From Octopus sinensis (taxonomy: Eukaryota), in the NCBI RefSeq assembly GCF_006345805.1, contig NC_043007.1:61256001-61320000 (forward strand): DNA of 64,000 bases, in the 5' to 3' direction. Under the pieces are notes generated by a model that searched no databases, was not told the origin of the DNA, and saw only the letters and a program-made list of their open reading frames with translations. The position numbers and the translations under genes are program-made. This document shows, piece by piece, positions 7,901 to 58,190 of this stretch. Each line of letters begins with the position of its first letter. The stretch's first letter is position 1.

Positions 7901-10564
7901 TAATATATTAATACCCCTTTTTCAACAAGTCTCATGTGATAATCCCAGTCAAAAGCATTCATTTTGGTGTCATATCTCGTTTGTAGGTAGCTTCGTAATC
8001 TGGTCTCCCTATCAAATAAATACCATATTTCTTTGCATATAATATGCCTCACTGATTATGGGCAAAAATATCACTTATATATAATACACACTGGCTTTTC
8101 CTTAGTAATATGATGTATAGAAAAAAATGTTTAACCCTTTAGCATTCAGATTACTCTATCAAATGTAATGTTTATTTACTCACATTGTTTTGGATTAATC
8201 ATGGATTAACTCATAGCTTTGAGATTTAAATGATGTGTGATTGTTTTTAGAATGACATTGTAATGTAGGTGTGAAAGGCTACATCTGGTTGGTTTGAGCA
8301 TAAAACAGGTAAAATATTTGGGCTGGATACGGCAAGTTTAACTGCTAAAAGGTTAATCAAATTTATTGTTATTAGTGTATAGATGGATTAAGTAATACTT
8401 TGCTTCATTGAAATATAGGAATATATGCAAGAAAGAATTAAGTAAAGGAAAGTAAAACAATAAGCTCATATATCCTAAACAAAACAAAAGGTAATTTCAA
8501 AAGTGACTTTTGAATTTTATCAGTGTAGGCTGCAAAAGTGTATGTTGTAAAGTTAAAGCTATGAAAAGTTTCTTTTTATATAAATTAAAACATGACATTT
8601 TAAGTTTTCAGAAAGTGAAAAGAGCCTCTTAAACACTCTTTATTCAGTATTTTGTATGTAATTTCATGGAACATAAATTATGCTGGCATTGTACATTTAT
8701 AGTATTTCTATCTCATGATAATGACAAACAGCCTCACCTCCAAAACTGAGATTTATTGCTATCAAATCTTAGTTTTATTTTCTGACTACTTATATCAACA
8801 ATTATGAGTCAAATTGTAGTTAATAAGACACCGATCAATGCAATCACTGATGTAGGCATACAAATTTTCACAACTGGGACAAAGGAATCCCAAGGAATTC
8901 TTACTATCAACCTTTAATGCAAAAGGATATAATAGACATAATGCAATATTTAAACACTTTCATTATACTTCAGTTTAAATTCTTTCTTTATTGAATGCTT
9001 TCAATATATGAGGGGTGTATGAAAAGTTTTGAGCCTAACTTTGAAACAGGGCTGCTAGGTAGCTGAAACAACTTTTTTCTGGTAAGTACAGTCTTTTCGG
9101 AGTATTCTTACTCATTTTCATGATTCTGATATTTAAATTCTTTTTGTTACAGATTTTTGAATAAACAAGTGTCGAGGTTACAAGGAAAATGGAGAAAACT
9201 GAGTATCGTGCTGTCATAAAGTACCTTCATTTAAAAGGCATGACTCCATCAGAAATTAATTTAGATATGGTGAGAACCTTAACAGACAATGCTCCTTCAT
9301 ATGCAACAGTTAAATACTGGGTAAATGAATTCCAGCGTGGCAGGGAGAGTGTAGAAGATGATCCCAGACCGGGGAGACCTCCAACTGCAACCACCGGGGA
9401 CAACATTGACCTTGCTCTTGGTATGATAATGCAAGATTGTTGAATATCCTGTCATCAGATAGCCAAGAGACTGGGCATCTCAACTGAAAAAGCAGACAAC
9501 ACTGTCACAAAAGAACTTGGGTTCTCAAAGGTTTCTGCAAGGTGGGTCCCTCACCTTTTAACTCCTGAACAGAAACGCACCAGGTGCACTTTGTCCACAA
9601 GCAACCTGGAACTGTTTGAAGCCGATGAAGAGAATTTTCTTGTTCGTTTCATTACTATGGACGAAAGTTGGGTTCATCACTACTGGCCTGTAACAAAAGA
9701 ACAATCAAAGCAGTGGAAGCACACATCTTCTCCTACCTCAAAGAAAGCCAGGGTCATTCCTTCAGCTGGCAAGGTCATGGCGTCAGTTTTTTGGGGATTC
9801 TCAAGGTGTCTTGCTGATCAATTACATTGAAAAGGGTCACACCATGACAGGGCTGTATTATTCTCAGCTACTGAAACGCCTTCGAGAAGCAATAAAAAAA
9901 AATGGTCAGGAATGCTCACCAGAGGAGTCCTTTTTCATCACGACAATGCTCCAGCCCACACCTCAGTGGTTGCCATGGCAACAATTCGTGATTGTGGATA
10001 TGAACTTGTTCCCCATCCACCTTATTTGCCACTCAGACTATTCCCAAAAATGAAAAAAGCCCTGGCTGGTCGCCATTTTGTCAGTGACAATAATGTTATA
10101 GATGCTGCAGGTTGTTTCTTGGAGTCTCAAACAAAAGAGTTCCTCTACGCCGAGATAATGGCACTTCAACCTCGCTGGAGAAAGTGTTCAGCCATCAAGG
10201 GGGACTATGTTGAAAAATAAATCATCAGAAGTCTTCTACTATGTTTTGTCTTTTTGAGGCTCAAGACTTTTCTTACACCCCTCGTATATATATATATATA
10301 TATAAATATGGTGAGGTGATCCCCTTCGGTCAGACACTGACCATGGGTTTGCACCCAAGAGAGTTACCCTCTGAGGCACAAGTCAGGGCAAGGTTGTTTT
10401 ATGGAAGACCAGCAGTCGGCCATGCATACCAGCCTCCCCTCTCCACGTCACCGATGTTGTCCAAGGGAAAGGCAAGGGCCGATACAGCTTGGCACCTGTG
10501 ACGTCGCAACTCATTTCTACAGCTGAGTGAAGTGGAGCAACGTGAAATAAAGTGTCTTGCTCAA

Positions 10565-18436: not shown

Positions 18437-21400
18437 GTGTCTGAACATGTTGTGTGAATAAGCAACTGTTCAAAATGGTACCTTGATAGACTGAATTATT
18501 GAGAGTTAGGCATCTCTGATTTGGTGTAGATTTGTTGCCTCCCTAATAACGTGTTGAACTCTAGCTCTGATATGATAATGTTACTACTCTGTCTCAGTGG
18601 TTCTCAATTGGGGGTTCATATGACCCTTGGGGATCCATATAAGATTTTGCTGTTAAAATCTAAGTACAATAAATTGCTTATACTTCTGCAATACACAAAA
18701 TATAGTATTTTTTCATATAATTCCTAATAATATTATAATAATTTAATTATAAAAATACAGCATGATTTTTTTTAATACACATTGAATGGCTATGGAGGTC
18801 CAGTAGAGTAAAATAGAAATCAAAGGGTCCATAGGCAAAAAATGGATGAGAACCACTAGTCTATATTATGATAGAAGATATTTACTGATATGGCTATGCG
18901 GTCAAGTTTATTTCCTAACAATATGGTTCTAAGTTCAGTCTCACTGTGTGGCACCTCAAGCAAATGTCTTTTACTCTAGCCTCGGGCTGACCAAGACCTT
19001 CTGTGTGGTTTAGGTAGACAGAGATTGAAAGAAGCCAATCAAATACCATTACTTCTACTACCATCAACATCACTATCATCATCATCATTTTAACATCAAC
19101 TTTTCTTTTCCATACTTGTATGGTTTAGATGGAAATCATTGCAACAAATTTTCTACAGATTAATGCTCTTCCTGTTGCTTACCCTCCCCTGTTTCTAAAC
19201 AAAGTAATATTTCCTCATGAACCAATATGTTTTACATCTGTCACATGAATTCGTGGACAAAGAATAATTATATTAAATAAAATCTCTTGTTAGTGTATAG
19301 AATAAACATATTTAACATAGGAGTGTTAAATTAGATGTCTCTCCCTCTCTTTTGTTTAATTTTCAAAATAGCAAACCTCTTAAACTTCTTTTCTATACAA
19401 ATTGATTAAAATGTGATATGCAAGAGAGACACTTAGAGTATTGTTTTTCTCTCTCAAAATATTACAACCTTTTCTTTTGCAAAAGATCAAGAAAGTATGT
19501 TTTCCTGAAGATTGTAATGATTATGAAATAATGGGATGAAATAAGAACTTACATGCAGTTTTCTATTTAGCTGTTTGTTTGAACAGGTAACTGTTTTGAA
19601 AACATGTCGTAAATCAGCAGAACCGATTAGCAGTATATTCACAGGATCTGGGCAAAATAACATTACATACATAGAAACATCGTATATATGTATAGGTATA
19701 TATATATGCATAGGTATATACATACAAGGGTTGGACAAAATAATGGAAACACCTGTCATTATAGCATCATAATTTTGAAATATCTATAAAACCATCAAAA
19801 ACTTGTTTATTTTTTATATTTTTTGATTTATTATTAGTGTTGCTTAATGTTTTGCTAAAATTGCTGTTTCTTTTCAGATATCATCAGTAAAAGGTAATTA
19901 AAAAATTAATTAAAATGACAGATCTATAAGACTTTCAAAGGGGTCAAATTGTTGGTGCTTGTATGGCAGGTGCTAGTGTAATCAAAATAGCTGGAATGTT
20001 TGGTGTATCAAGAAGTACTGCCGTGAAAGTAATGACAGCCTTTGAGAAAGAGGGAATAACCTTGTTGAAACAAAATTCTGGAAGAAATCCAAAACTTTCA
20101 GACAGGGACTGTCGGACTCTTATGCAAATTGTTAGAAAGGATCACAAAAGTACAGCTCTCAAAATTACTGCAGAGCTTAATGACCACCTTGAGAACCCAG
20201 TTTCCACAAAAACTGTTTGCCAGGAGCTGCACAAAGCCAGATTTCATGGGAGGGCTGCAATCAGAAAGCCACTACTTTCAAAAACAAATGTTGCGAAGCA
20301 TTTAGAGTGGAGTAAAAACCTACAGAATTGGTCCCTAGGAGCAGTGGAAGAATGTTGTTTTCTCAGACGAGTTATCCTTTACCTTATTTCCGACCACTGA
20401 CTGAGTATACGTGTGGAGACAGCCAAAAGAAGTATTTGACTCAGACTGCCTTCTTCCAATTGTTAAACATAAAAAATTCTTAATAGAAAGACAAAACCCA
20501 GATATAGGAGCAGCTTTAACACACACACAAACACAAAGCTTATGTCTCTAGCAGTTTGTAACTTGTTATTGTTACTGTAGTGTGCCCCTAATGAAAGCAC
20601 TTAGTTCTCACTGGCCAAGTCCACTATTTTCTGAGTAGGATGAATTTTACTATTTGTTTCGGTTCTGTTAGGAATGCTACATCATCTGGAAACATTATCT
20701 GTAAGAGAACCTTGTCCTAATCAAGAAAAAATTTGTCTTGTTTGTTTTGTTTTGTGACACTAAACAAAAGCTAGGATTGCTTGAAGCAAAAAAAAAAAAA
20801 AAAATCCTATCTACCATGCAGGACACCACACAGGTTAGCAACTTTCATAAGGATCTATAGTGTAGATTGAATTAACAGTCCCTAAAATGCCCTACTCCAA
20901 ACTGTGTTGGTATACAAGACATTTTTAATGTTAATTGAAGCATAAGAACTGAATGACAGAATACCACCACTGATTGAAAAAAAAAAGAAAAGAAGGAAAA
21001 TACCGTTTTCATTTGAATTATCTTCCAATTTCAACTTTTGGAGTTTATTTTCAGGTTCTGAAACATTAATAATAAAATAAAATAAATCAGAATCAATGAA
21101 ACAGAAGCAAAAAACCAACACTCTCCTTCAGCTTCTGGAAATACTGTGAATGAAGAGCAGGAATATTAATATTAAATTTAAAAATTAGAAAGTTCAGTCC
21201 AAATAGACAAGGATGGCGACTGTAGTACAGAAGGTAGAGATTCATGGTAGATAGTTTCTTATCAGCCATTTCCCATTCTGTTCACCTCTAATAGTACAAT
21301 AATTGTTTATATTTTATTCCTCCAGGGTTGGCAAATGAAGTGAAATCATCTTGCAACACTTATGTAGTGATCACCTGAGTAAATTTTGTCAAGTAGTCTG

Positions 21401-31609: not shown

Positions 31610-34106
31610 CAAAATGGGACAAGAATGCAAAACATCTGGACAGCTAGGTGATACGGAAAGAGACAACTTGACCCGTCCTTGTTTACTTTGTATCGTCTAT
31701 CTGGATGTTTTGTTGTCCCTATTTTTGTTTCACCTAGCTGTCTGAATGTTTTGCGTTCTTGTCCCATTTTGTATTTTCTATATATATAGCGGTGTGCGTA
31801 CACTTTGCTCTCTCTCTCTCTCGCTATATATATATATATAAATCAAGGTGTATAGTATTAGGAAGTTAATTGTCATGTGATGAGTCACCTATACTGCTAA
31901 GTGCTTTATAGATGCGAAACCAATGGTCACTAGCTGACTGCCTATAACAATTAACTTCCTAAAAATATATTACTGCTTTAATGGTTTACAGTGTGTTTCT
32001 TTTGCGAATATATGAACTACTGACAATATATATACACACACACACACGCATGCACACACACGCACGCATGCACACACACGCGCACACGTCTGTCTGATAT
32101 TAGCCCACAGGCTCATTAGGCTGGAACTTATCCTGGATTCCGTGGTGTATAATTGACAGAGAGTGCATACTGAGGTTTGGAAAGAATATGCAAAATGGAT
32201 TGTTGAGCAATGAATGCTTATGACTTCTTGCTTTTGTTTTAATTTGTTTAGGCAAACAAGGAGTATTCACCACTAGTTCTGGATTACAGATTGCGTATCT
32301 GAGTGGCAGGCAGTGTGACACTAATTACGGTTTTACTGTAAATGATGTTGATGATCTCATTAATTCAGTATCCTCAAGCAAACAATTCAAAGGAGTTGAT
32401 ATATTAATTACATCTCAGTGGCCAAAAGGAGTTGAAAAATATGCTGGAGATGTGGTAAGTTCTTACTAATGATGTTTTTTTTTTCTGTATTGTGATTCTC
32501 TTTCTTATCTTGTTTCATCTTCATCTCTTCTTTAGCACAATAATTGTAGTAAAGTTTGAATTATGGCATTATTTGAAGGATTAAATTTGTAAAGTTCTCA
32601 TATGTGAGGTGGTGCTGAAAAGTTTATGGCTTTGGGTAAAAGAAAATACAAGAGGATCAGTTAATTATGATTTTATTCAACATATTCCCCTCTCAGATTC
32701 ACACAATTATTGCAGCAGTCCTTCAGTTTTTCTAAGCCCTGTAAAAAAACTTGGAAGGTTGGGCCTCAAACTAGGCCTTTCGCGATACCCTTAAAACTAG
32801 TAACTTTTCAGCACTCCCTTTTATATATATGTTTGTATATTTATGTGTGTGTATCTGTATATATATAATACAGTCTACATAATTGTAGTCTGTATTGAGT
32901 TGTTATTTGAACTAAGCCTTCTTAGATCTATAGTGGGTATATTCATATACATATATGAATGATGACGACAGTGATGATGATATATATATATATCATCTTC
33001 TAAAGTCCAGCTTCCATGCATGCATGATATATATATGCACATACATATATTATATATATATATATATATGCAAAACATTTTCTATTTTTTTAATATTGCA
33101 GGAAGGTGTTAATTCAGATCAATGTGGTTCTCAACTTATTTCTAAATTGGCCCTTAAATTACGACCACGGTATCATTTTGTTGGTTTGCAAGGAATTTTT
33201 CATGAAAGATTACCATACAGGTAATTATTTATTTGGTTGATTATTTTAATTTTTGACTAGGAAGTGTGAAGTAAACACATCTCATGGTTTCATCGTTATA
33301 TAATCTGCTTTACATTGATTTTTTCATAACATCACTGGAATAGTTTGTTTCTGAAAATGTATTATATTTTTAATACAGGTTGATGGCGCAGAGGCTAACA
33401 GTAATCTCCCTTGTATTGGGAAGGCTTATAGGACCATCAATTTGTTTAATGTCTGTTTTCCCATTCCAGCATAGGTAGAATGAAGGTTTCTTTTGAGGTA
33501 TTATTTTAAAACTGACGGCTATATCTGTCACTAATCCTTACCAGTTTTTCAAGCAAGAGATTCTAGTTCTGCTTGACTTTGAAAGTACATCACTATGGAG
33601 TGCTTTGTTGACAGGGAACATAATGTTCCTGCTTTTGCTTGAGCAATTTCATGTTAGCACATTTCAGACTGTAAACATTCACATACAGGCATATGCACAT
33701 TTGCACTCTCTCTCTCTCTCATCCCCCCCACATGCTGTCTCTCTCTCTCTCTCTCTCTCACACACGCACACTCACAATTAGTTTGCTTCCTAACCATGTG
33801 GTCTGGGTTTATCTTACTGTGTGGCACCTTGAGACTGTGGCCGAAGATGATCAAAGCATGAGTGAATTTAGTAAATTTAGAAATTTGTTGTGTGTGTGTG
33901 TATATATATATATATTATATATATATATATATATTATATATATATATATAGGGAGTAAGAGAGAGAGAGAGAGAGAGATAAAGAGCATAAGTGTAAAATA
34001 ATATAAACATGCACACACATACACACATTCATTCCTATATATATGTATTCATTACATATAAGATGAGGCTATTTATTCCATAATTGCAACAGATAGATGG
34101 ACACAC

Positions 34107-43575: not shown

Positions 43576-46500
43576 AATGTTTAATAATAATTTAATAAAA
43601 AATAAAGTAAAATGTATGGTTACTCACCAATAATGAATGATATTGATTTAAGATGATGATGAAAATAATGACGGTAGTGCCTGCACAGCAAAGATTTAAA
43701 GCTCTTCAGGTAAAGCATCTTCTTCAAGTGTTTTAGGAGATGTATTTTCCTGAGTGGCTATCTTGGTGAGCTTGAAGTACATTGTGATGGGAAGTTGCTG
43801 TCACTGTTTCTTCATGGTGGTGAGGAGAGTTTTATGTCTGCGTGGCAGTATTGATACCATTTTTAAATTGGAGAGACCAAACCATATAGGGATCCCATGC
43901 TTTCGTCTTCCCTTGCCGTTCCTTTGCTATCCTTAAAAGGTTGGACAATGTTCAATTGTCATGCCCACCTCATCCTCCTCTTTCTCTGGATCTGGTGCTT
44001 CCTCCTCCTCTTCACTGGCAGACTTAGTTAACTCCAACAAATCTTCATCTATCAGGGTTTCAGAGTGGGCATCGATGAGATTGTTGATCTCATTTTGTGT
44101 GATGTCGTCAAAACCATCGCCTCCAAGTTCTTTTGCCAGTTTCACCGTATTGTTGACAGCCTCGTGCTGAATATCTTTAGGTGAGAAGCTCTCATAGTCC
44201 TGGACACACTCTAGCCACATCTTTTAGCATGCGATGAGGGTTTCATTTTTCATGTCTTTAAGAGCAGTGTCGATGACTGACAGGCATGTTGCAATTGTGA
44301 AGTTATGCCAGTACTCCTTTAACTTGAAATTCTTATCTGAATCCATTGCATCCGCAAAGTGTAGAAAAGAGTTCCAAGTGTAAAGTGTCTTGAAAGCACA
44401 GATCACGCCTTGATCCATAGACTGGATGAGGGAGTTGGTGTTAGCAGGGAGGAACTTGACTTGGACTCCCTCGTGATTCAAATTCAAAGAGTGACCACCA
44501 GCATTATCCATGACGAGCAACACCTTGAATTCTATGCATACGTTTTGGAGGTATTCCTTGGCTTGAGGGATGAAGCAGTGGATAGGCAGCAAGTTTTTAT
44601 TCTTATTTTTGAAAGCCCTCAAGTTTGTGGATTGTAGATAAATCCTGGTTTCATCATGAAGCCAACAGCATTGCCACACATAATTAGTGTCACTCTGTCC
44701 TTCTGTGCCTTAAATCCTGGAGCTCTGGCTTCATCTTTTCACTCACAACCAAGCCTGTGCCTGTATGATATTTATATATGTGTGAGTGTCTCTCTATATA
44801 TATCTAGGCATCTAATTACTTTTGAGGTGTCTGTGTATATATATATACATATATGTATATACACAGACTGGCTCCTGTGCAGGTGGCACATGAAAAGCAC
44901 CATTTGGGCGTGGCTGTTGCCAGTACCACCAAACTGGCCCTAGAGCTGGTGGCACGTAAAAACACCCACTACTCTCTTGGAGTGGTTGGCGTTAGGAAGG
45001 GCATCCAGCTGTAGAAACTCTGCCAGATCAGATTGGAGTCTGGTTCGCCAGACCTCAGTCAAATCGTCCAACCCATGCTAGCATGGAAAGCGGACGTTAA
45101 ATGATGATGATGATGATATATGTATATGTACACCCTATTTCTGTTGATGTATGAGAGTCCTGCTGCTAAGACTTATTGATGTTGAAAGGCACCACTACAT
45201 ATCTGTCACCTTCACGTAGTGGTATGTGATAATGCAAATACTAATAATAAATATTGCCAATAGAAACCATAAACTCATCACATACACAGGTAATATTTGC
45301 AAGACAAATGTCAGTAGATGACCAATACAATCAGAGGCCTTTTGGATATCACTGGAGAGGGTAGCAGCTGTCAGTGACACATGAGGAACAGGTGTTAGGT
45401 GAGACAGAGACTTCCATGGCAGTTTGGTACCATCATCATCATTATCATTTAACGTCTGTGTTCCATGCTAGCATGGGTGGGATGGTACCACAAAAGCCGG
45501 GCAGGCTGAAGCCTGCACCAGACTTCTGTGACTGTTTTGGCCTTTCCTAACACCAGCCTCTCAGCAGAGTGGACTTAGTGTTTTTATGTGGCACAAGCAC
45601 AGGCAAAGGGTATAGATAAAAGAGGAAACTAATTTCTTTGATGAGATATTGGTTTCAAATTTTTACACAAAACCAGCAAGTTCAGGGGAGAGGATAAGTC
45701 GATTATACTGACCCCAGTGCTTCACTGGTACTTATTTCATTTGAAAGGATGAAAGGCAAAGTCAACTATGCTGAAATTTGAACTCTGAACATAAACACAG
45801 ATGAAATGCTGCTAAGCATTTTGCCCAGTGTGCTAATGATTCTGCCAGTTCATCGCCTTCTTTGATGAGATATTAACTCCAATACAAAAGTCCTTTAGAT
45901 AAAACCAAACTGTTTTCTGTCTCCTCTTTTAACTTTTTCTAATGAATTGTAGAGCACCTGTGTACTGTATACAATAAGTTCATTATTATGTTACTTAAAG
46001 GTTTAGATGTCAAATACAGCTAAGACAAAAGTAAGAATGGGGCATCTGGAGACAACCAGAGATGGTAATGATCAAAATGTTATATAAAATTCAAAATTAT
46101 AAAAGATGAAATTAATAGCCTGGAAAATTTAAATGATTATCATCTTAAACAATTTGAAATATTTAAATATAATTTTTTCCAGTTCCTTTATGCTTTTCAC
46201 ATTGAGCCTCTTGTAAATATGGACAACACAGAATTAACAAAACAACCTGAAGATGCCACTGAATGTCCTTACCAGTTGTCTCAGTTAGAGGACAGCAATG
46301 TAAAAGATGTAAGTGGTTAATGTTTTACTTTCAGATCTAACTGCTGTTGTTTATTTTGTAATTTTGTTGGGAGAGAAAGAGTGAGAGAGAGAGAGAGTTA
46401 CAATTACTATCATTCAGATATAAAAAACAATTGTTTCAATTTCATGAACATATCCAAATTAGCAAAGACTTTACCAACTGTGATAAATGGATAAAATAGT

Positions 46501-49500
46501 TAAATAGCATTAAAGAAAAAAAGCCAAATTCTGTGAACAATGTAAATGTTTCAAAAAGTTTTTGTGTTATGCAGGTGAGCAGTTAGGCAAAAATTTATAC
46601 AGTAATGTCATAGATGAAAACGAAGATAAAAGATATTATATTACCTTACATAAGTTGTTAAATGATCCTGTAATATTTCAGAGATTTTCCTTTTAAAACA
46701 GAAGAAAGAAAATAACAAGTTCAGAGAAATGTTTTGTTACCAGTAGGCCATTTTACTTCTGTACTTTGTAGATCTTTTTAACAGTAGAATATAAGTATTG
46801 ATATAGTGTAACATAGCAGAAGGTTAGCATAAGTTTAATTTCCTATAATATCTGGACACTTTTATAGTTTAACATAATATATAATCATTGATATTGTAGT
46901 ATATAGACACAGTTGTAAGTCAACAAGTGTATATTTGCAGTACTTCAACTTATTATTTTATATAGACACTAATATAAGTGTCATTTAACTACTTAAGAAT
47001 GATTATTTCACTGCTGTAAATAGCATGAGTACAATGTACTTGGTTGGTTAGTTTAAATACTGAGTTTGAATGTTCCTGTATGTTTGAAAAATTCAAATCA
47101 ACTCCATTGCATTGCTATACAAAAAGGAAATTTTCAATGGAATTTCAGTGGCCAAGTGGTTTACAGAGGCTATAATACAGTTGGTTAGTCTAGTTCTATA
47201 GCAAGTAGATATCAGTGCCTGATACTGTTTTTTCTTTTCTAGGAAGGTCAACAATTCTTTTTTGATATGAAGGCTCCATTAGCAAAAGGACAGAAAAGAT
47301 CTAAGGATGATGAAGACAAACAGAAGAAAAAGCACAAACCAGGTATATATCTTCATCATGATTATCATTCTTTAATACTGTCTTCTGTGCTGGCATTAGT
47401 TAAATGGTTTGACAGTATCTGATGAACCAGGAGATTGCTTCAAGCTCCAATGTTTGCTTTAGTTTGGTATCTCTGGCTGGATGTCCTTCTTAATACCAAC
47501 TACTTCACAGAGTGCACTGATGCTTTCTTGTTGAACTGGCACTAGTGAAGTCACCAAGTAACTTGTATAACAAATCCCTTCAATTGAGTGGTGTTATAGT
47601 GGAGAGAGAGGTGGCTTTATGTCAGATGTTGAGAAATTTAAAGCATATTTGAGTAACAGAAACAGGTGTCTTGCTATAGAAATTGATTGATTGTTTACAC
47701 TGCCATTACATTTACATATATTTTTTTCTTTTTGCCCTTTTCATAAACTTAGTATAATAGCATATATATGTAACTGTGTATAATATATATGTAACTGTGT
47801 ATAATAATTATCAAGTTGTCGTCATGATGGATTGGCAAAATGATTAGAACATCAGACAAAATGCTTTGTGGTGTTTACTTATGGCCATTTATGCTCTGAG
47901 TTCAAATCTTACTGAGGCCAAATTTGCCTTTCATCTTTGCAGAATTCATAAAATAATGTACCAGTCAAGTACTTGAGTTGATTTAATATTTCTATAAAGC
48001 ATCCAAGCTGTGAATGGAATTATAAAAAAGTAAAAGAAATTTAAGATACAAGTATTCAACATACCCTTTTCTTTATTCAAACTTTGTCACTGTCCTTACC
48101 TACATAACTATTACCTTATATATATGTTCATGCTGAGCCAATGAAGGTCCTGTTTTTAGTCTCCCATCTTGTTAGAAGCTGGACTACCTTAAATCATAGG
48201 ACTGTTCGATCAAGGTTGACCTGGCTTAAATGCCAACATAAAATAACTAAGGACAAAATAATTATTTTACATTGAATTTCTTTGCAAACTCTTAACATTT
48301 GACTAGACACTATATTCCTTCCTTTTGCAATACAACTGTACTGATTATGGATTTGAGCTTCTATTCAGATTTAATTTCTTGTCTGTTCTGTTCATACTAT
48401 TGAACAAGCCAATGAGAGAGCCTTTATTTGGTTGCTGAACCTGATAGAAATGACAGTCAAATCTCTCTCATACCCTGCTGTTTTTGAAATAGAAGAACAC
48501 ATTACACAGTATAGTCCTAATTACATAAAAAGATTGAAGGACCGCTGTTAGTATGCCTTTGATTGCTGTCCTACTGAACAAATATATGGCATGGAATTAT
48601 TGTTGCACCATGCTTCAATACTTTCACTTGACTCATAGTATAGAAGTAACAGCATTGATGAAGTTTAATCAAACAAACAACACTAATGTTTCATATTTGT
48701 TATTGTAGCACAACCATCTGGCCCTTGTTGGTTCTGTTTACGTGGAGAAAAAGTGGAGAAACAATTGGTTGTTAGTGTTGGAGAGACAGTGAGTGTATTT
48801 CTATTTCTGCTTATAGATATTTGCATTACACCACACATACACAATTGCATGCACACATGCTATATATATATATATATAATACAAATAAGAAAATGGAGAT
48901 ACAAATTTAGTTTCTTCATCAACTTACGGATATTAGAATGTTGGATTATTTATTCATTTAGCAAAATGAGAACCTCAATAGCATACATATATATCTTATA
49001 AGTCAATACATATAAGTAAAGAATACAAATTATCTTATATGTATTGAATTATAAGATATATATGTATGCTATTGAGGTTCTCATTTTGCTAAATGAATAA
49101 ATAATCCAACATTCTAATATCCGTAAGTTGATGAGCAAACTAAATTTGTTTCTCCATTTTCTTATTTGTATTATAAATTTACAGTAAAAATATTTCTTTA
49201 CCTTCACCCGTTTAATACAATAAATGAGTTAATTGCATTGCAATTAAAAACATTCATGTATTAAGAATCTGGGTACTTTACCAACAGAATATTGGATAAA
49301 TACTATCCCATAGTGGGTTATACCCATAACCCCTATCTTACTTTGTATTATATATATATGACCAACTTCTTACAGTTTCCATCTACCAAAATCACTCATA
49401 AAGCTTTAATCAACCTGAAATCATGTGGTTCCAAAGCAAACTTCTTAACCATGCAATCATGCCATATAACTAATCAGAATGTACTAATTGTAGAATTCTC

Positions 49501-52500
49501 AGTGAATTGTTGGACAAAATACTCTCAATATTTGTTTCGACTCTCTGTGCTTTATGTTCAAAATCCTGCTGAGGTCAACTTAGCTTTTTATCCTTTTGTG
49601 GTCGATAAAAATATGCCAATCCAGGGTAGCAAATTGACAGAATTTGTTAGAGCGTCAGATGGAACACCTTATAGTATCTGTTCTGGCTCTGTACATTCTG
49701 AGTTCAAATCCTGCCCAATCCCTGGAAATAGGTATTTCTTTTAGGAGTTGCAGCTTTGTAGCTAACAGATAAAATCTGCTAGTTTGAAAATCCAATAGAA
49801 AGCTTAGTTTCCTTGGTTCAGTTGGAAGATTCACTATCAGTGCTACCACTGCTACTGCAGCCGTCACTGCCATCAGCAGCAGTAGCACCACCACCACCAC
49901 CACCACCACCACCAGGCTGGTGATCAGGCTGCTTATGTCCTTGAGAAATTATTGCTAGAGTATGTTATAGCATTGTGAAATGGTACCAACAGTACAAAAA
50001 CTGTTGCTTTCTAAATATTTGAGGTTTTAAGTCTTTCTCGCAGAAGTTAGTCAGGGAGATTTATAATAGCAGATTTATGGGAGAATCAACAGCTTCTATA
50101 GCAGAACCCTGAGAACCATTGAGAACATCAGATGAAACTATCATGTTTTCAACAAAAACTTGTGTGCAATCACGCATCAGCTCACAGCCTTTCACCTCAT
50201 AGCTATCTGTTGCATGTGCTGGTACAGACATATCCTCTATCTCCTGCTGGATCGTCCTACCAGGGTTTCACTCTTATTTGATTCAAGAGCTGTGGACTGG
50301 AAGAGGCCTGGTGGCAGGCCCATCATCAGATGGCTGGATGTGATTGGGGAAGATTTCCAGAGGCTCAATGCCACCTTGGAGGATGCAAAGGAGCTGGCAC
50401 AGGACTGCCAGCGGTGGAGAGTGCCAGTGGATGTGGTCACTTCTACACATGAGGACATCTCTGGAACCACTAGCATGGGTTGATCCCAGCCTCATCAAGT
50501 GAAGATTTATGGGGAGTTTACAATTGTTTATGATTTACGGAGTTTTCTAGGACATAAGCAGCTCAATCTAATTTCAAAAGAATGCTGACCTCATCTGTTG
50601 TGTTTTTATGTTTTACACTGTTTTAATCATGTCTAATTGTGATTGTCCTTGGTGCCCTTTTACCCTACACACACACACATACACACATGTACATTAGTGC
50701 ATACATATAAACAGCTCACACAGACATGCACACTTAGATATATTTATTTTCTCTATAGATTGGTTCTGAGCTCAGAATCTTATATCAGTGTGTCAGTGTT
50801 CTTTCTCACTTTACCACTGTGCTGGTGTATTTTCTATTTTGACTGTTGCATTTTATTTACAATTTAGCTATGTCTGTATTTCATTTCTTTGAATCAAAAT
50901 TTTGAAATGTTTTCACTGTCAATATTATTTTATTGTCTTTGCTGTTTTTTATGATCTAACAAATGTTGTTTTTCCAGACATACATGGCTTTAGCAAAAGG
51001 AGCCATGGTTCCAGATCATGTTCTTATCCTCCCAATTGGTCATTACCAGTCTACTGTGGTGGCTCCAAGTGAAGTTGTGGAAGAAATTGAGAAATATCCT
51101 TTTACCGTTTTATTTACTCACAGCAAGCATCATATTTTCTGGTATACAAGTCAATGTATATATGTGATTCCATGTGATATGGTTTGTGTGTGAAATACTG
51201 GAGAGCCCTTATTTTTCCAAATCCTGCTGCACTTTTCATGGAATTTTTAGTTCTGCAAAGTTGTCTTGGTGTATAAGTTCATCTACCTTTTTTAACTGTA
51301 AATTTTGGTCTGAAAGATTCGTCTTGCATGCTTGAAAGTATAGTATCAGACATTGACTATGTTTATAAATAGCTTAAACAAATTACATCACACATTTAAA
51401 AGATAATTCAATCTCTTTTTACCTCAATATACACTCTCTCTCTCTCACACACACACATGATATATTTATATCTATTTAGCCTTAACAATGCGCCAAATAT
51501 AAGTCCAATTTAAGAAAATATTTCAAATGTGTGGGGAAAGTTGTAGTTTTCTTTGAACGAAATTACAAGACATCACATCTTCAGATACAGGTAAGAAAAG
51601 TTTATATTTCTATACCTCTGTTTGTCTGTTGTTTATCTCTCTCTCTGACTAGGTGCAGGCATGGCTGTGTGGTTGAAAAGTTTGTTTTTCAACCACATGG
51701 TTTTGGGTTTGATCTGAGATGCATAGGTTAGTGGTTAGGGTATTTGGCTCATGATCATAAGATCATGAGTTCAAAAACAGGCGACATGTTGTGTTCTTGA
51801 GTGAGTCATTTTATTTCACATTGCTCCAGTCCACTCATCTAGCCAAAATGAATAGCCTTGTCACATTCTGAGTCATACTGAATCACCCTGAGAACTGTTA
51901 AAGGTATATGTGTCTGAAGAGTGCTCAGCCACTGCACATTAAATTTCATGAGCAGGTTGGTCTGTTGACGGGATCAACTGGAACCTCCATTGTCGTAACC
52001 AACTGAGTGCCAGTTCTCACTGCTTGGCACCTTGGGTAAGTGTCTTGTATCAGAGTGCTGGCAAAACATGGTCTTGTGAATGAATTTGGTAGACGGAAAC
52101 TGATAGAAGTCTGTCATATGTGTGTGTGTGTGTGTGTGTGTGTGTTAGTGTCTCCTTGTTGTGACTCCATGTGATAGTTGTAAAGGAATGTCACCATCAT
52201 ATAAGCAGTGTTCTTTGTTTCCAATCTTCTGTGAAAACATGTCTGGTCTTGGGAAATATTATCTTACTTGAAAACAAGTGAAGGTTGGTGACAGGAAGGG
52301 CATCCAGCTATAGAGAATCTGCCTCAACAAATTCCACTTGACCCATGTTAACATGGAAATGTGGTCATTAAAAAGTAATATTGTTTGTGTCTCCATGTTG
52401 TGACTCTATGTGATATGGTTTGTGTGAGAAATATTGGAGAGCCCCTCTGGGCTGATTGAAAAGGGTTCTGGTCTCTCAACTGAAAGATCAACAGTTGATA

Positions 52501-55500
52501 TTCTATCTTTTACAAAGACATTTAGCTGCTACTGGTTCAGTTCATCTAGCTGTAAATAGGTACCATTAAAGCTACATCAAACGAAGTAGCCTCCATATGG
52601 TTGCTTGACATGCTAAACATAACTACCAAATTTCCTGGAAGTCACTGTCTAACATCTTAGAAAAGGAGATATTGGATAATGTGAACATGGGTTCTCAGCA
52701 TGTAGGGAAATGACAGGGTGATCACTGCTGGAATGCCTTTAATCATAGATCTGCTCAGTTAGGCTGACTTCTGGTTAAACATCAATAACAATATGTTTAA
52801 GTAGTGAAGGACGCTGTATCATGAACAAATGTTCTTTGGTTTCTAATACTGAGTTAAGTCTGATTATGAGAAAAATAACCTCACAATTTGTATGAATAAT
52901 ATTGGAGAGCCTCTCTCTTGTAAACATGACAATGTGGTGAGAGAAATAATGCTAAGTTTTCATCATCATTATCATCATCACTCCTCTATATCAGGAATAT
53001 TTTTTTGCATCACTTAAAGATGTCATTATAGTTGCCTGTAGATATCTATGAAGATGTGATATTTTTTTATATAGGTTATTATCTATTTTAATTCTTGTTT
53101 TTATTTATATTTTTGTTGTTGCTTAAATAATAATAAATTGACGATCTACTTTTGTTTAGCCTATTGTTTAGTCTGTTCTTTAGTATATTGTTTTGCCGAT
53201 TTTTAGCCTATTGTTTCTTAGGTAAAAATATTACTTATACAATGTTGTTATGTCTATTTATCTTCATTGTTTCTACATGTTCTTTCCCTAGGCCATTCCT
53301 GTCCCTGCAGATCTTGCATGTAATATTACCGACACATTTACAGAGTTTGCAGCTGAGGAGTCCATTGATCTGAATGAAATACCAAAGCATTCTGATTTAA
53401 AGCAGGTAAGAATGGAAATATCTAATAAAGTTTACTGTAGTTCAGAGAAAGTCGTTGGTGAATTGACAGGCTGTTTGCTATACAAGCAGGACGGATGGTG
53501 GCTTGTATCTCAAAGACACTTGACATTCAATAATCCACTTCAACTTGTTTATGTAGGATACAGTAAAAGTAAAACAGTAAAGTTACCTTCTTGAGTTACA
53601 CTGGCTCATAAGGGCCAGTTTCCCGGTTTCAAGGTATATATATTCCCCATCTGGATGGGATGCCAATCCATCACAAGATTCCTCATTTTTGCCAGCTGAG
53701 TGGACTGGAGCAACGTGAAATGAAGTGTTTTGTTCAAGAACACAATGTGTTGCCCAATCCAGGAATTGAAATCACAATCTTGTGGTCATGAATCCAACAC
53801 CCTAACCACTAAACGATGTGCCTCCACTAGAGCACAGTAGTGCAATCTAGTTCCTTTCTATAAATATATAAGGGTTCTATATTGAAAAATGAGCTAAGAT
53901 CAGTTGGCTATCCCTATCTGTGGAGTTTATTGGTAAGACACATGCGGTTATGAAAACCCAGTTGGCTCTATTTATCACACTTTATAATGTGGCAGTCTGG
54001 TAGAATAATTAGTATTCCAGAAAAAATGCTGCTAAGCATTTTGTCTGTCTTTATGTTCTTAGTTCAAATTCTGCTGATCATCTTTGTCTTTCATCCTTTT
54101 TGGGGTTGATAAAATAACTACCAGCTGAATATCTGGAGTTGTTGTAGTTGACTAGCCCCCTCCCCACCAAAATTTCAGGCCCTATGTTTATAGAAAAAAG
54201 AATGTGAACTAAACAGAACAGGAAGAAACATGTGGATGGGAGAGTTGCTGAAGAGGTCACAGATGTGTGATGAAAGATTTCCAGACAATGGACTTAAGAT
54301 AAAATAAGAACAATAATGAGTGAAGAATGAATATATAATGTGTGTTTATTTAGCAAGAAAAAAAAAAACGACCATCCCAAAACATAAAAATATCTGTTTC
54401 TATACATGATTTCACATGAAGAATCTTGCAAAGCAAATTCAGAAATGTAATTAGCTCACATTGTTGAGAAACTAAGTAATATAGAGAAAAACTGAGATGG
54501 ATGGAGTATATTTAGTTGTTCAAATTTGGGAAAGCATCTGGTTGTAAATTATTGATGTTTCAGCAAATCATACAGATACCTGACATTGTAAACTACTGTA
54601 AACCATGCTATTAAAGATAATAATTGAGTTAAAATGGTTGAAATAAAATCCTTTCTTTTGGTATGGATTTCTTTTATCTTTAGTTTGTAGCAAAAATATT
54701 GATACAAACTGATAGTTAATTTATACAGCTTTTTAGGCTATTATGACTTTTATGCTTCTCCATCTCAACTGGGAGTGATAAGGCCTTCCAGGAGCTACAC
54801 TGGAGTTTTTTAGAAGACATGTAAAAAAAAAAAACAAATGAAAGTAGGGCTACACAAAATTAACTAACAGATATATGACCACCCTGTCCTTGTATTTCAA
54901 TTTTTGTCCTAATTTCAGCAGCATAAATATTGAATATCAATAGTTATAATTTGTTTTCTTTCACTTCTTACTTTCTTAAATCTTACTTTATCTAGGTAAC
55001 TTACCTGTTACAAAAGTTTGCAATCACTGTGATATTTTAAAGAGAGGTGATCTTTTGTTGGTCACTAACAACAACAGTGCAGTCAGATAACAAAAAAACT
55101 TGCTTGCTTACATTAACCACAAGGTTCATGCTCAATAAAGTTCAAATCATAAGAATATTTTTGTTGCTTGTATTTCTATCTTTATATGTTGCTTATATTT
55201 TTATATCTTATCTTTTAAGAATTATATTTATAAATAAAGTATATATTAAAATTAATGTTTGACAGTTTTTATAGCTTATAACCTATTTATGTCTGTATAG
55301 AATTTATTTGCTAATTTCATTTTATTTACTTAGAAATGGTTGTTTTTGTAAGCTACCAGCAACACATTATTATTTATGTGGCACAATTACAATTAGTAAA
55401 CATTGCAAATGGTAAAATATTTTTTTTCAATAGCATTTATAGTATAAAGGATGTAAAATCAGTTGTAATTCAAAATTTGATTCTGTACTTGGGCTCACTA

Positions 55501-55927
55501 CTTGCTCACAACTGTAATGAAAAATAAAATATCAGTTATTGATTGCTTTCAAGAATTTGTATATTTTTGGTTACCAATTATTATTTCCAGATTGTTAATG
55601 TTGAGGCGCCATATTTCTATGCAGAAATACCAACAGGAGAGAAGTTTCTCTGCAGGATATCCAAAGGTTTCCCCTTACAATTTGGCAGGTAATTGTAAAA
55701 AGGTTATTAATTTTCATGCAGTTGAGATAAATTTGTTGTCGTATTGACATGTTAGAGTTTCAAAATTTTTGTTTATTTTCAGAGATGTTTTGGCTTCACC
55801 AATGCTGCTTAATATGCCTGAACGCATCGACTGGAAGAATTGTACAGAAAGTCAAGAAAAGGAAAAACAAATGGCTCAGGAATTTAAGAAAAAGTTCAAA
55901 GACTTTGATTTTAATTTTAGCTCTTAG
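23861..55927 (+). CDS. CWF19L1: CWF19-like protein 1 (metallophosphoesterase-like N-terminus plus CwfJ C-terminal domains), complete, 521 aa
   Basis: 15 exons: 23861-23883, 27927-28011, 29872-29947, 30656-30757, 32252-32454, 33102-33220, 40970-41054, 46183-46308, 47243-47342, 48709-48788, 50978-51093, 51497-51590, 53292-53405, 55591-55688, 55783-55927. Total 1566 nt = 521 aa plus stop. Motifs: [53 protein letters not shown]...[32 protein letters not shown]. Confidence 0.97.
26021..27180 (+). mobile_element. Decayed pogo/Tigger-type transposase
   Basis: CENP-B-like N-terminus (KLDVLKRL), [12 protein letters not shown] and [15 protein letters not shown] remnants with frameshifts and stops. Confidence 0.75.
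27927..28011 (+). CDS. CWF19L1: CWF19L1 exon 2 ([28 protein letters not shown])
   Basis: TTGCAG acceptor, GTAAGT donor, 85 nt. Confidence 0.95.
29212..29426 (-). repeat. SINE family B, 5'-truncated copy with an 18-bp TSD
   Basis: GAGGTCRACTTTGCCTTTCATCC core; TSD AATGGATATCCAAATATT at 29194-29211 and 29427-29444. Other copies: about 1495-1700, 11645-11897, 45650-45860 (-); 15500-15700, 17640-17830 (+). Confidence 0.85.
29872..29947 (+). CDS. CWF19L1: CWF19L1 exon 3 ([16 protein letters not shown]...)
   Basis: TAG acceptor, GTAATT donor, 76 nt. Confidence 0.93.
30656..30757 (+). CDS. CWF19L1: CWF19L1 exon 4 ([11 protein letters not shown]...ENILYLG)
   Basis: TTCCAG acceptor, GTTTGT donor, 102 nt. 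Confidence 0.93.
31858..31962 (+). ncRNA. Degenerate hammerhead motif flanked by a 19-bp inverted repeat
   Basis: GTGATGA...CTATA/TATAG...CGAAA-CCAATGG-TC between TTAGGAAGTTAATTGTCAT and ATAACAATTAACTTCCTAA. Confidence 0.45.
32252..32454 (+). CDS. CWF19L1: CWF19L1 exon 5 ([18 protein letters not shown]...[21 protein letters not shown])
   Basis: TTTAG acceptor, GTAAGT donor, 203 nt. Confidence 0.95.
33102..33220 (+). CDS. CWF19L1: CWF19L1 exon 6 ([10 protein letters not shown]...RPRYHF...ERLPYR)
   Basis: TTGCAG acceptor, GTAATT donor, 119 nt. Confidence 0.95.
34529..34608 (+). ncRNA. Minimal type-I hammerhead ribozyme motif
   Basis: CTGAAGA 34532-34538; stem II GAAAGACACAA/TTGTGCCTTTC; GAAA 34594-34597; palindromic ACACGTGT stem III; GUA cleavage triplet ending at 34605; short stem I TTC/GAA. 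Confidence 0.7.
35270..35900 (+). mobile_element. RTE-clade LINE 3' fragment
   Basis: [10 protein letters not shown]..., [19 protein letters not shown]...[19 protein letters not shown]; frameshifted; continues into a SINE-like tail. Confidence 0.85.
36646..37086 (+). mobile_element. Non-autonomous Helitron (second family)
   Basis: 3' CCCGAGCGAAGCACGGG hairpin followed by CTAG|T; 5' TATATATAAAGCTGAA end blends into a TA tract. Confidence 0.65.
39038..39123 (-). ncRNA. Minimal type-I hammerhead ribozyme motif (same family as 34.5k)
   Basis: Minus strand: ATTTTC-CTGAAGA-GAAAGCTGCAAA...TTTGCAGCCTTT-GAAA-CATGTG-TA-GAAAAT. Confidence 0.72.
39742..40044 (-). repeat. tRNA-derived SINE family E, well-preserved copy
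   Basis: The minus strand begins GTGGATGCGCAATGGCCCAGTGGTCAGGGCAGCGGACTC (A-box-like); tail shared with fragments at about 5500-5640 and 28640-28750. Confidence 0.7.
40081..40171. ncRNA. Pair of opposite-strand variant hammerhead motifs inside a fold-back
   Basis: Plus: CAAAAGCTGT-CCGCCGA-ACG GGAA CGT-GAAA-CTCTGAG-TA-ACAGCTTTTG. Minus: TGT-CCGACGA-ACG GAAA TGT-GAAA-CTCCGAG-TA-ACA. Confidence 0.55.
40390..40575 (+). repeat. 62-bp minisatellite, about 3 copies
   Basis: Unit AAAAACACCATCCGAGCGTGGCCGTCTGCCAGCCTCGTCTGGCACCTGTGTCGGTGGCACAT. Confidence 0.9.
40970..41054 (+). CDS. CWF19L1: CWF19L1 exon 7 ([21 protein letters not shown]...)
   Basis: TGTAG acceptor, GTAAAA donor, 85 nt. Confidence 0.93.
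41521..43541 (+). repeat. About 1.04-kb near-identical tandem duplication (41521-42505 and 42558-43541)
   Basis: Offset 1036-1038; only a 1-nt and a 2-nt indel noticed; (TA)n at the junctions. Confidence 0.95.
41708..41902. repeat. About 90-bp-arm inverted repeat (duplicated at about 42746-42938)
   Basis: Arms 41708-41797 and 41813-41902. Confidence 0.9.
43060..44700 (-). mobile_element. Decayed pogo/Tigger-type element interrupted by a SINE
   Basis: ORFs 44224-44679 ([29 protein letters not shown]) and 43933-44220; terminal TA-CAGTAGTCCCC at 43060, duplicated at 42024. Confidence 0.8.
44870..45117 (+). repeat. SINE family D (RTE-type tail: GGAAGGGCATCCAGC...CCATGCTAGCATGGAAAGCGGACGTTAAATGATGATG)
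   Basis: Many copies: about 7060-7215, 18140-18435, 27400-27617, 40575-40750 (+); 8-350, 34850-35160, 56850-57030 (-). Confidence 0.85.
46183..46308 (+). CDS. CWF19L1: CWF19L1 exon 8 ([10 protein letters not shown]...[10 protein letters not shown]...)
   Basis: TTCCAG acceptor, GTAAGT donor, 126 nt. Confidence 0.93.
47243..47342 (+). CDS. CWF19L1: CWF19L1 exon 9 ([10 protein letters not shown]...KKKHKP)
   Basis: TTCTAG acceptor, GTATAT donor, 100 nt; basic NLS-like stretch. Confidence 0.92.
48709..48788 (+). CDS. CWF19L1: CWF19L1 exon 10 ([27 protein letters not shown])
   Basis: TGTAG acceptor, GTGAGT donor, 80 nt. Confidence 0.95.
48875..49175. repeat. 142-bp-arm inverted repeat (17-nt loop)
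   Basis: Arms 48875-49016 and 49034-49175 are near-perfect reverse complements. Confidence 0.92.
50160..50500 (+). mobile_element. RTE-like LINE 3' end fragment
   Basis: [23 protein letters not shown]...AQDCQRWR is typical of an RTE C-terminus. Confidence 0.75.
50978..51093 (+). CDS. CWF19L1: CWF19L1 exon 11 (TYMALAKG...[12 protein letters not shown]...EEIEK)
   Basis: TTCCAG acceptor; followed by the U12 donor ATATCCTTT; 116 nt. Confidence 0.93.
51094..51496 (+). other. U12-type (minor spliceosome) intron with AT-AA termini
   Basis: 5' end ATATCCTTTT; branch site CCTTAAC at 51480-51486; restoring the reading frame requires the 3' end ...GCCAA at 51496. Confidence 0.85.
51497..51590 (+). 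CDS. CWF19L1: CWF19L1 exon 12 ([10 protein letters not shown]...[14 protein letters not shown])
   Basis: Preceded by the U12 branch point CCTTAAC and an AA 3' end; GTAAGA donor; 94 nt. Confidence 0.9.
53292..53405 (+). CDS. CWF19L1: CWF19L1 exon 13 (AIPVPAD...[10 protein letters not shown])
   Basis: CCTAG acceptor, GTAAGA donor, 114 nt. Confidence 0.93.
55591..55688 (+). CDS. CWF19L1: CWF19L1 exon 14 ([18 protein letters not shown]...FPLQFGR)
   Basis: TTCCAG acceptor, GTAATT donor, 98 nt. Confidence 0.95.
55783..55927 (+). CDS. CWF19L1: CWF19L1 last coding exon ([18 protein letters not shown]...[10 protein letters not shown])
   Basis: TTTCAG acceptor, TAG stop at 55925-55927. Confidence 0.95.
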
Positions 55928-57189: not shown

Positions 57190-58190
57190 TCAGAGTAATT
57201 ACCATTACAATCAACACATTTTTGCTAGTCAGTTACAAGTTTGTTTATTCCAGTAACATAAAAATCTGGAGTTCTGGAGCTGATGAACTCTTTGAATGCA
57301 CTTTCAGCATTGGTTTGATTTTTGAACTCTTTCTCTCACAGGAAACCATCACGCTGCTTAAACAAATTGGTAGTTGGTAGGAGAAAGGTCTGAGGAATAA
57401 GCTGGATGGGGAAGAACTTCGCAGCTAAGTTCCCTCAACTTCTGGATCATCATTAGTGAAACGTGTGGTTGAGCATTGTCATGAAGACTAATTGGCCCTC
57501 TTCTGTTGGCTAGTCTGGGACAGAGGAGTTGCAGTTTTTCATTCATTTTTGCAATTTCACGGCAATATGTTTCTGCAGTAATGGATTTTCCGGGTTTTAA
57601 GAAGTTATAGTGGATGAGTCCAGCAGTACACCACCAAACAATCATCATAACCTTTTTGAAGAGTTTGGATTTAGGGAAGGTTTCCAGTGTAACCATTGCA
57701 AAGAACATTTTTTATTATTGCACAGAATCCACTCTTCATCACAAGTTACAATATGGTTGAGAAATGGATTGGTCTGGTTATGGAGAAGTGACAAGCAAAT
57801 TTCATATCTGCACATTTTCTGATTTTCCTTCAAATCATATGGTACCCATTTGTTGAACTTTTTTGATTTTCACATCACATGCAAATAGTTGCAGGCAGTT
57901 TTCTGGCTAACCTGAAGTTCTTTTGCCAAGTTCTTGAGTGGTTTTACATAGATCTTTCTCAACAACAGTCTTTAATTGACCGTCATCGATGTTCACTATG
58001 CTCATGATCTCCAATGCTCAGGTCTCCACTGCGAAATCATTTAGACCATTTTTGAGCTGACCACTCACTGGTCATTTCACTTTTCATTGATCGTGAGCAG
58101 TTTCAGCTGCTTTATGTTCTTGTTTGAAGTTGAATAGCAAAATTGCTCAAAAATCACGCTTTGACAGTTCCATTTCGGATGATTGTAACA
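57190..58190 (-). mobile_element. Decayed mariner transposase (Hsmar1/SETMAR-like)
   Basis: Fragments KAAETA, IVTCDEEWILCNN, LHDNAQPH and HPAYSSDLSPTNY; many stops; ends approximate. Confidence 0.8.

Follow-up and report, generated by a model that had tools for sequence, protein, structure and literature searches.

We found that the CWF19L1 gene in the 64-kb window (the whole stretch of 64,000 nucleotides that was analysed) is interrupted at 51094-51496 by what is, judging from sequence comparison, in all likelihood a U12-type intron of the A-type class with AT-AA ends. It appears to be an old and stable orthologue of introns in other animals rather than a recent lesion or a product of sequencing error. 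The features of the intron are as follows:

51094..51496, + strand: the intron, 403 nt, phase 2, with AT-AA ends and U12-type signals
51094..51102, + strand: U12-type 5' splice site ATATCCTTT, agreeing at 9/9 positions with the consensus [AG]TATCCTTT
51479..51486, + strand: branch-point box GCCTTAAC, agreeing at 7/8 positions with the consensus TCCTTAAC
51495..51496, + strand: 3' terminal dinucleotide AA, at the sole junction that gives a gap-free EKYK

At the 51093/51094 boundary the exon ends in ...GAAGAAATTGAGAA and the intron opens with ATATCCTTTTAC (ATATCCTTTTACC), and at the 51496/51497 boundary the intron end ...TTTAGCCTTAACAATGCGCCAA is followed by the exon start ATATAAGTCC. The perfect U12 donor that the first-pass annotation had read after ...GAG AA is borne out by ATATCCTTTT, which lies directly at the exon end and agrees at all nine consensus positions. 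Its CCTTAAC at 51480-51486, 10 nt before the 3' junction, was likewise recovered, with the ten bases AATGCGCCAA reaching up to 51496. The presumed branch A is 51485, and its distance to the last intron base is 11 nt; the optimum for U12 branch-to-3' splice site spacing is 11-13 nt (PMC3584512). The stretch from the box to the 3' end, AATGCGCCAA, has no polypyrimidine tract, and the pyrimidine fraction is 0.56 over 18 nt (-20 to -3). With the donor ATATCCTTTT, no tract and a terminal CAA, the intron lacks the donor, tract and YAG of U2-type introns. The donor ATATCCTTT is identical in a close relative (L001-3), in the species represented by L004-13, in L016 and in L017.

Counts of these motifs were rejected as evidence, since both occur at or below chance frequency across the window (ATATCCTT, 2 copies in 64 kb against 3.8 expected; CCTTAAC, 4 copies against 7.5) and placement alone is informative. 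The sole + strand ATATCCTT of the window marks the exact point where homology ends, and homology resumes 10 nt after one of the four CCTTAAC copies. From the window rates, we estimate the joint chance of both placements at roughly 1e-7. A second ATATCCTTT at 8922-8930 on the - strand has no exon or open reading frame upstream and was dismissed as a chance match. A (CT)n(CA)n microsatellite at about 51435-51458 falls within the intron, the branch box following ~25 nt further downstream.

The position of the junction was derived at the DNA level from protein conservation. As the first-pass annotation had claimed, 51093|51497 is the sole 3' junction that restores EKYKSNL, giving an ungapped, conserved EIEKYKSNL within the CwfJ_C_1 domain. 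Sliding the junction produces neither GT-AG nor AT-AC, also as had been stated, the shifts from -2 to +4 yielding AA-CC, AA-CA, AT-AA, TA-AA, AT-AT, TC-TA and CC-AT. The first two bases of the intron are thus AT and the last two AA, because the donor is fixed by ATATCC and only 51496|51497 restores the conserved frame. We also paired all donors in 51030-51139 with all acceptors in 51420-51559. Of the GT-AG, GC-AG and AT-AC pairs, fourteen leave the frame open; every one of these (14/14) inserts or deletes residues relative to the homologues, while the aligned homologues have no gap in the junction block (10/10). The least bad canonical pair, 51107/51503 (EKYPFTSNL), was rejected for its donor ACC|GTTTTA, the lack of a pyrimidine tract and the absence of its GT from the closest relative, where L001 reads ACCTTTTTT. 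A transcript contig (P0071) that matches the Tegillarca model outside the gap of that model reads straight through the site as ...EIDQYKSSLKK, which indicates that a bivalve uses this junction position in vivo. This contig supports the position of the junction, not its dinucleotides. Protein searches for the spliced product of the window gene itself returned nothing above 70% identity, and the searched collections yielded no transcript from this species or its genus.

The gene around the intron is, from its domains and alignments, CWF19L1. Pfam matches CwfJ_C_1 (E=1.3e-20) and CwfJ_C_2 (E=5.5e-11) were obtained on the joined exons, and joining 51093 to 51497 gives a CwfJ_C_1 match with E=4e-17. 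The top named relatives of the gene are all 'CWF19-like protein 1'. An N-terminal metallophosphatase region resembling Dbr1 is the mark that separates CWF19L1 from CWF19L2. The exons at 32251-32463 and 33126-33221 could be aligned with the N-terminal portion of CWF19L1 as modelled in Pinctada and Tegillarca; these short pieces gave no Pfam match. The window gene resembles CWF19L1/Drn1 in having both CwfJ_C_1 and CwfJ_C_2, together with an N-terminal region that can be aligned with CWF19L1 models from molluscs. The yeast orthologue of CWF19L1 is Drn1, a protein that boosts lariat debranching and binds spliceosome components (PMC4105757). Six upstream CWF19L1 exons were located by tblastn in the window between 32251 and 48789, and the exons nearest to the intron are:

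end at 48789, + strand: previous exon, ending in ...GGAGAGACA (GAGACA) and followed by gtgagt, an ordinary donor
50978..51093, + strand: exon upstream of the intron ('exon 11' of the first-pass annotation), from tblastn to mollusc and vertebrate CWF19L1, within CwfJ_C_1
51497..51590, + strand: exon downstream of the intron ('exon 12'), completing the K codon, with gtaaga directly after it
53292..53405, + strand: next exon (...KHSDLKQ), with ordinary AG and GT at its flanks
55591..55689, + strand: next exon, with ordinary AG and GT at its flanks
about 55781-55880, + strand: exon carrying CwfJ_C_2 onward, from continuation of the domain

The exon at 50978-51093 is preceded by ttttccAG, and its last two bases, AA, begin the K codon. 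Exon 12 ends at 51590 and does not run on beyond it. The remaining CWF19L1 splice sites that were read are all ordinary GT-AG. An Rfam search of the 64-kb window returned no matches.

We then investigated the same position in other organisms. Short read-through open reading frames ending in 'EKYPF', the translation of AA|ATATCCTTT, led to contigs of other species, and a metagenome contig scan added 80 loci; the junction was placed at each locus by the same codon rule. The orthologous intron, which the earlier reading had proposed to check in other molluscs, is U12-type at the same codon and in phase 2 in about 25 other sequences. In these ~25 distinct sequences, the donors are of the form [AG]TATC[CT]T and the boxes CTTAAC or CTTGAC. 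The states found at this position are:

AT-AA: L004-L013, a mollusc-like species, in 10 independent assemblies (10/10 with AA)
AT-AA: L023, Biomphalaria glabrata, in the chromosome assembly GCA_025434175.2
AT-AG: L016, Meretrix (run: PMC12229300)
AT-AC: L017, a eukaryotic locus with an 84-nt intron
GT-AT: L018 (887-1162) and L070/L072, two insect-like metagenome hosts, with GTATCCTT...CCCTTAAC + 9 nt...AT
U12-type GT-AG: L015, L041, L050, L083, L088 and about 18 related hosts with GTATCTTTT donors
U2-like GT-AG: L014 (6103-6468), L065, L091 and L093, at the same codon
no intron: vertebrates (P0001-3, P0029, P0034-38 and others), several other taxa, and the plant Cichorium (L024)

Within the L004-L013 set, L011 is a polymorphic variant of the species and keeps the AA. 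The branch-to-3' distance is 11 nt in all three AT-AA introns, namely those of the window, of the L004-L013 species and of Biomphalaria, the last with the box GACTTAAC. In the U12-type GT-AG set, a CTTAAC or CTTGAC box lies 10-15 nt from the 3' end in every case. With GT-AT, the insect-like hosts add a second rare end pair to this position. Among the U2-like introns, the L014 donor GTATGCTTTT is two bases away from a U12 donor, and L065 retains a relic TTCTTAAC 22 nt upstream; from these remnants, the two look like U12-to-U2 conversions at different stages. Five loci (L033, L082 and L084-L086) are intronless here and have a short intron ~10 codons upstream, between block residues 27 and 30.

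On this distribution, the intron dates back at least to the common ancestor of its lophotrochozoan and insect-like carriers. An origin before animals was considered and rejected, the plant homologue (Cichorium, L024) having no intron at the site. The AA end is common to a gastropod and at least two other mollusc-like lineages, and is therefore regarded as old and stable and not as a private, recent lesion. The first-pass annotation had proposed a drift from AC to AA. The AA end itself stands, but recent local decay does not, since two other mollusc lineages have the same end at the same 11 nt, and the source may have been either AC or AG. Compared across carriers, the intron has repeatedly undergone loss or conversion, in line with the standard model of how minor introns evolve. 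That orthologous minor introns switch subtype and convert from U12 to U2 is reportedly also described by Lin et al. 2010. In the model of subtype switching and U12-to-U2 conversion by Burge, Padgett & Sharp 1998, as far as it is cited in PMC3584512, minor introns change in these ways. The position studied here resembles that model in showing AT-AC, AT-AA, AT-AG, U12-type GT-AG, U2-like GT-AG and precise loss, and differs from the classic conversion pathway in the GT-AT of the insect-like hosts, which forms an extra branch.

The removal of this intron can be pictured from established knowledge of minor splicing, with dependence on U11/U12 and the identity of the branch A taken as assumptions. 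U11 and then U6atac would pair with ATATCCTTT, and U12 would pair with GCCTTAAC, bulging the A at 51485. The 3' site would be set mainly by its distance from the branch point, so that cleavage would fall 11 nt downstream, after AA, the terminal A being tolerated where C is usual.

We considered four other accounts of the AA end. An assembly or sequencing error at base 51496, with a true intron ending in AT-AC or AT-AG fashion, would find some room in the fact that the closest relative's contigs (L001-3) cover no more than the first ~80 nt of the intron and so miss its 3' splice site, and that the exon-12 read-through open reading frame has no match on record elsewhere. It is very unlikely, however, because it would require the same error in two other lineages: the same AA at the same 11 nt is present in the 10 assemblies of the L004-L013 species, in the L011 variant and in Biomphalaria glabrata, and it is not credible that this one base was wrong three times over by coincidence. 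It is also very unlikely that the mRNA mainly uses another junction, be it the AG at 51514 (which deletes YKSNLR), the AA at 51502 or the cryptic GT-AG pair 51107/51503. These alternatives keep the frame open, U12 3' site selection is error-prone (PMC3584512), and in the Tegillarca model predictors picked such a cryptic pair (GHYQST|SSLKK). Against them, all put insertions or deletions into a block that is gap-free in every homologue. The AT-AG acceptor at 51514, which keeps the frame at the cost of 6 residues, lies 29 nt from the branch A, far outside the 11-13 nt optimum, and the GT at 51107 is absent in L001 and has neither a U2-like context nor a polypyrimidine tract. The predictor's cryptic pair is moreover contradicted by the Tegillarca-like transcript P0071. 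Minor use of alternative sites, such as 51514 or a CAG in L004, is possible. This CAG stands 3 nt upstream of the AA and offers an in-frame AT-AG alternative that adds one N, and judging by it, an AG-ended isoform is possible in that species.

Removal of the intron by the major (U2) spliceosome, or decay of the intron that leaves the gene a pseudogene, is extremely unlikely. U2-dependent introns with non-canonical ends do exist (PMC1557818), and four orthologues (L014, L065, L091 and L093) have been converted to U2-like GT-AG. The donor of the window intron, in contrast, is a perfect U12 site and a poor U1 site, no polypyrimidine tract is present, and a U12 branch box stands at the right distance. 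Every mapped CWF19L1 exon is open and conserved and has good flanking sites, which speaks against a pseudogene. Finally, ADAR might edit the terminal A to inosine, so that AI would be read as AG by the spliceosome. An AA-to-AI edit of this kind makes a 3' site in mammalian ADAR2 pre-mRNA, some molluscs (the coleoid cephalopods) edit RNA heavily, and the repeats of the window resemble what we take to be cephalopod SINEs. We nevertheless regard editing as hardly conceivable here. The duplex around the 3' site is not unusually stable (z = -1.54), AT-AG is itself a disfavoured U12 combination (PMC3584512), the snail Biomphalaria has AT-AA as well, and mammals and plants splice AT-AA introns without editing (PMC1557818, PMC10639083). 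An AT-AA intron handled by the minor spliceosome is accordingly the reading that we retain below.

AT-AA minor introns form a class that is already known, and the CWF19L1 intron is a further, ordinary case of it. Sheth et al. 2006 listed 8 such introns across four species, some of them conserved between human and mouse (PMC1557818); the known cases include human and mouse RASGRP4 and FLJ21106, and human MSH3 (PMC1557818). In a survey of more than 3000 genomes, AT-AA outnumbered every other non-canonical type of minor intron, in animals and in plants (Larue & Roy 2023, PMC10639083). The statement that AT-AA is rare, with which the intron had originally been singled out, therefore holds for its absolute frequency, yet AT-AA leads the non-canonical types of minor intron (PMC10639083). 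Non-canonical ends make up ~3.8% of conserved animal minor introns, and molluscs are comparatively rich in minor introns (PMC10639083). AT-AN introns have been treated as one 'A-type' class that, in human cells, is less efficiently spliced and depends on CENATAC (PMC8280824). The window intron resembles the known AT-AA introns in its ATATCCTT donor, in a TCCTTAAC-type box placed 10-13 nt before the 3' end, in lacking a polypyrimidine tract and in ending with A where C is usual. Its AA is conserved among related species, as that of RASGRP4 is in human and mouse. It differs from RASGRP4, FLJ21106 and MSH3 in gene and in phylum, vertebrate CWF19L1 being intronless at the site. It differs from the known cases also in that its orthologous position spans nearly the whole known range of end pairs in one data set. 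No paper connecting CWF19L1 with a minor intron came up in the literature searched, which fits the lack of an intron at this site in vertebrates.

Slow splicing of the intron might be rate-limiting or autoregulatory for CWF19L1, which is itself spliceosome-associated. This is speculation, and the idea draws on one observation, that human A-type introns are spliced less efficiently (PMC8280824). A stronger version, in which AT-AA and the 11-nt spacing have been held since before the mollusc classes split, while elsewhere among animals the intron switched subtype, was converted or disappeared, and in which a slow A-type throttle on a debranching cofactor has been selected, is unlikely. If true, it would mean a feedback loop between intron turnover and the activity of the minor spliceosome.

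The intron has practical consequences for gene models. The Biomphalaria CWF19L1 annotation is split in two at the intron (L023 9130-10072): model 1 ends at 9252 by read-through into the intron, and model 2 (P0022) starts at 10001, inside the next exon. In the models for Pinctada, Tegillarca and Batillaria, the exons on either side are missing or shortened, while the Lottia model is intact, and the mollusc protein records P0022, P0082, P0086 and P0092 are broken at the intron. The intron thus defeats gene predictors, and annotations of mollusc CWF19L1 must therefore allow AT-AN introns. This finding puts one more conserved AT-AA minor intron on record. It also provides a series of AT-AC, AT-AA, AT-AG, GT-AT, U12 GT-AG, U2 GT-AG and loss at a single position, and this end-pair series is a possible natural test set for the effect of the 3' terminal base on minor splicing.

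Other features of the window were noted in passing. Transposase fragments lie in and around the introns of the gene, at 19963-20400 (+), 44224-44679 (-), 57358-57708 (-) and 9189-9443 (+); the types are Tc1-like HTH_Tnp_Tc3_2, pogo/Tigger-like DDE_1, mariner Transposase_1 and, by eye, a mariner-like N-terminal open reading frame. A low-complexity open reading frame with long runs of D and N (1714-2073, +) is probably simple-repeat DNA and not a gene. A SINE-like repeat with the core GCAGGCATGGCTGTGTGGT occurs at 3328, 31472(-), 36227, 42484(-), 43520(-) and 51655, that is, in six copies at <=3 mismatches against none expected by chance, and one of these copies lies just downstream of exon 12.
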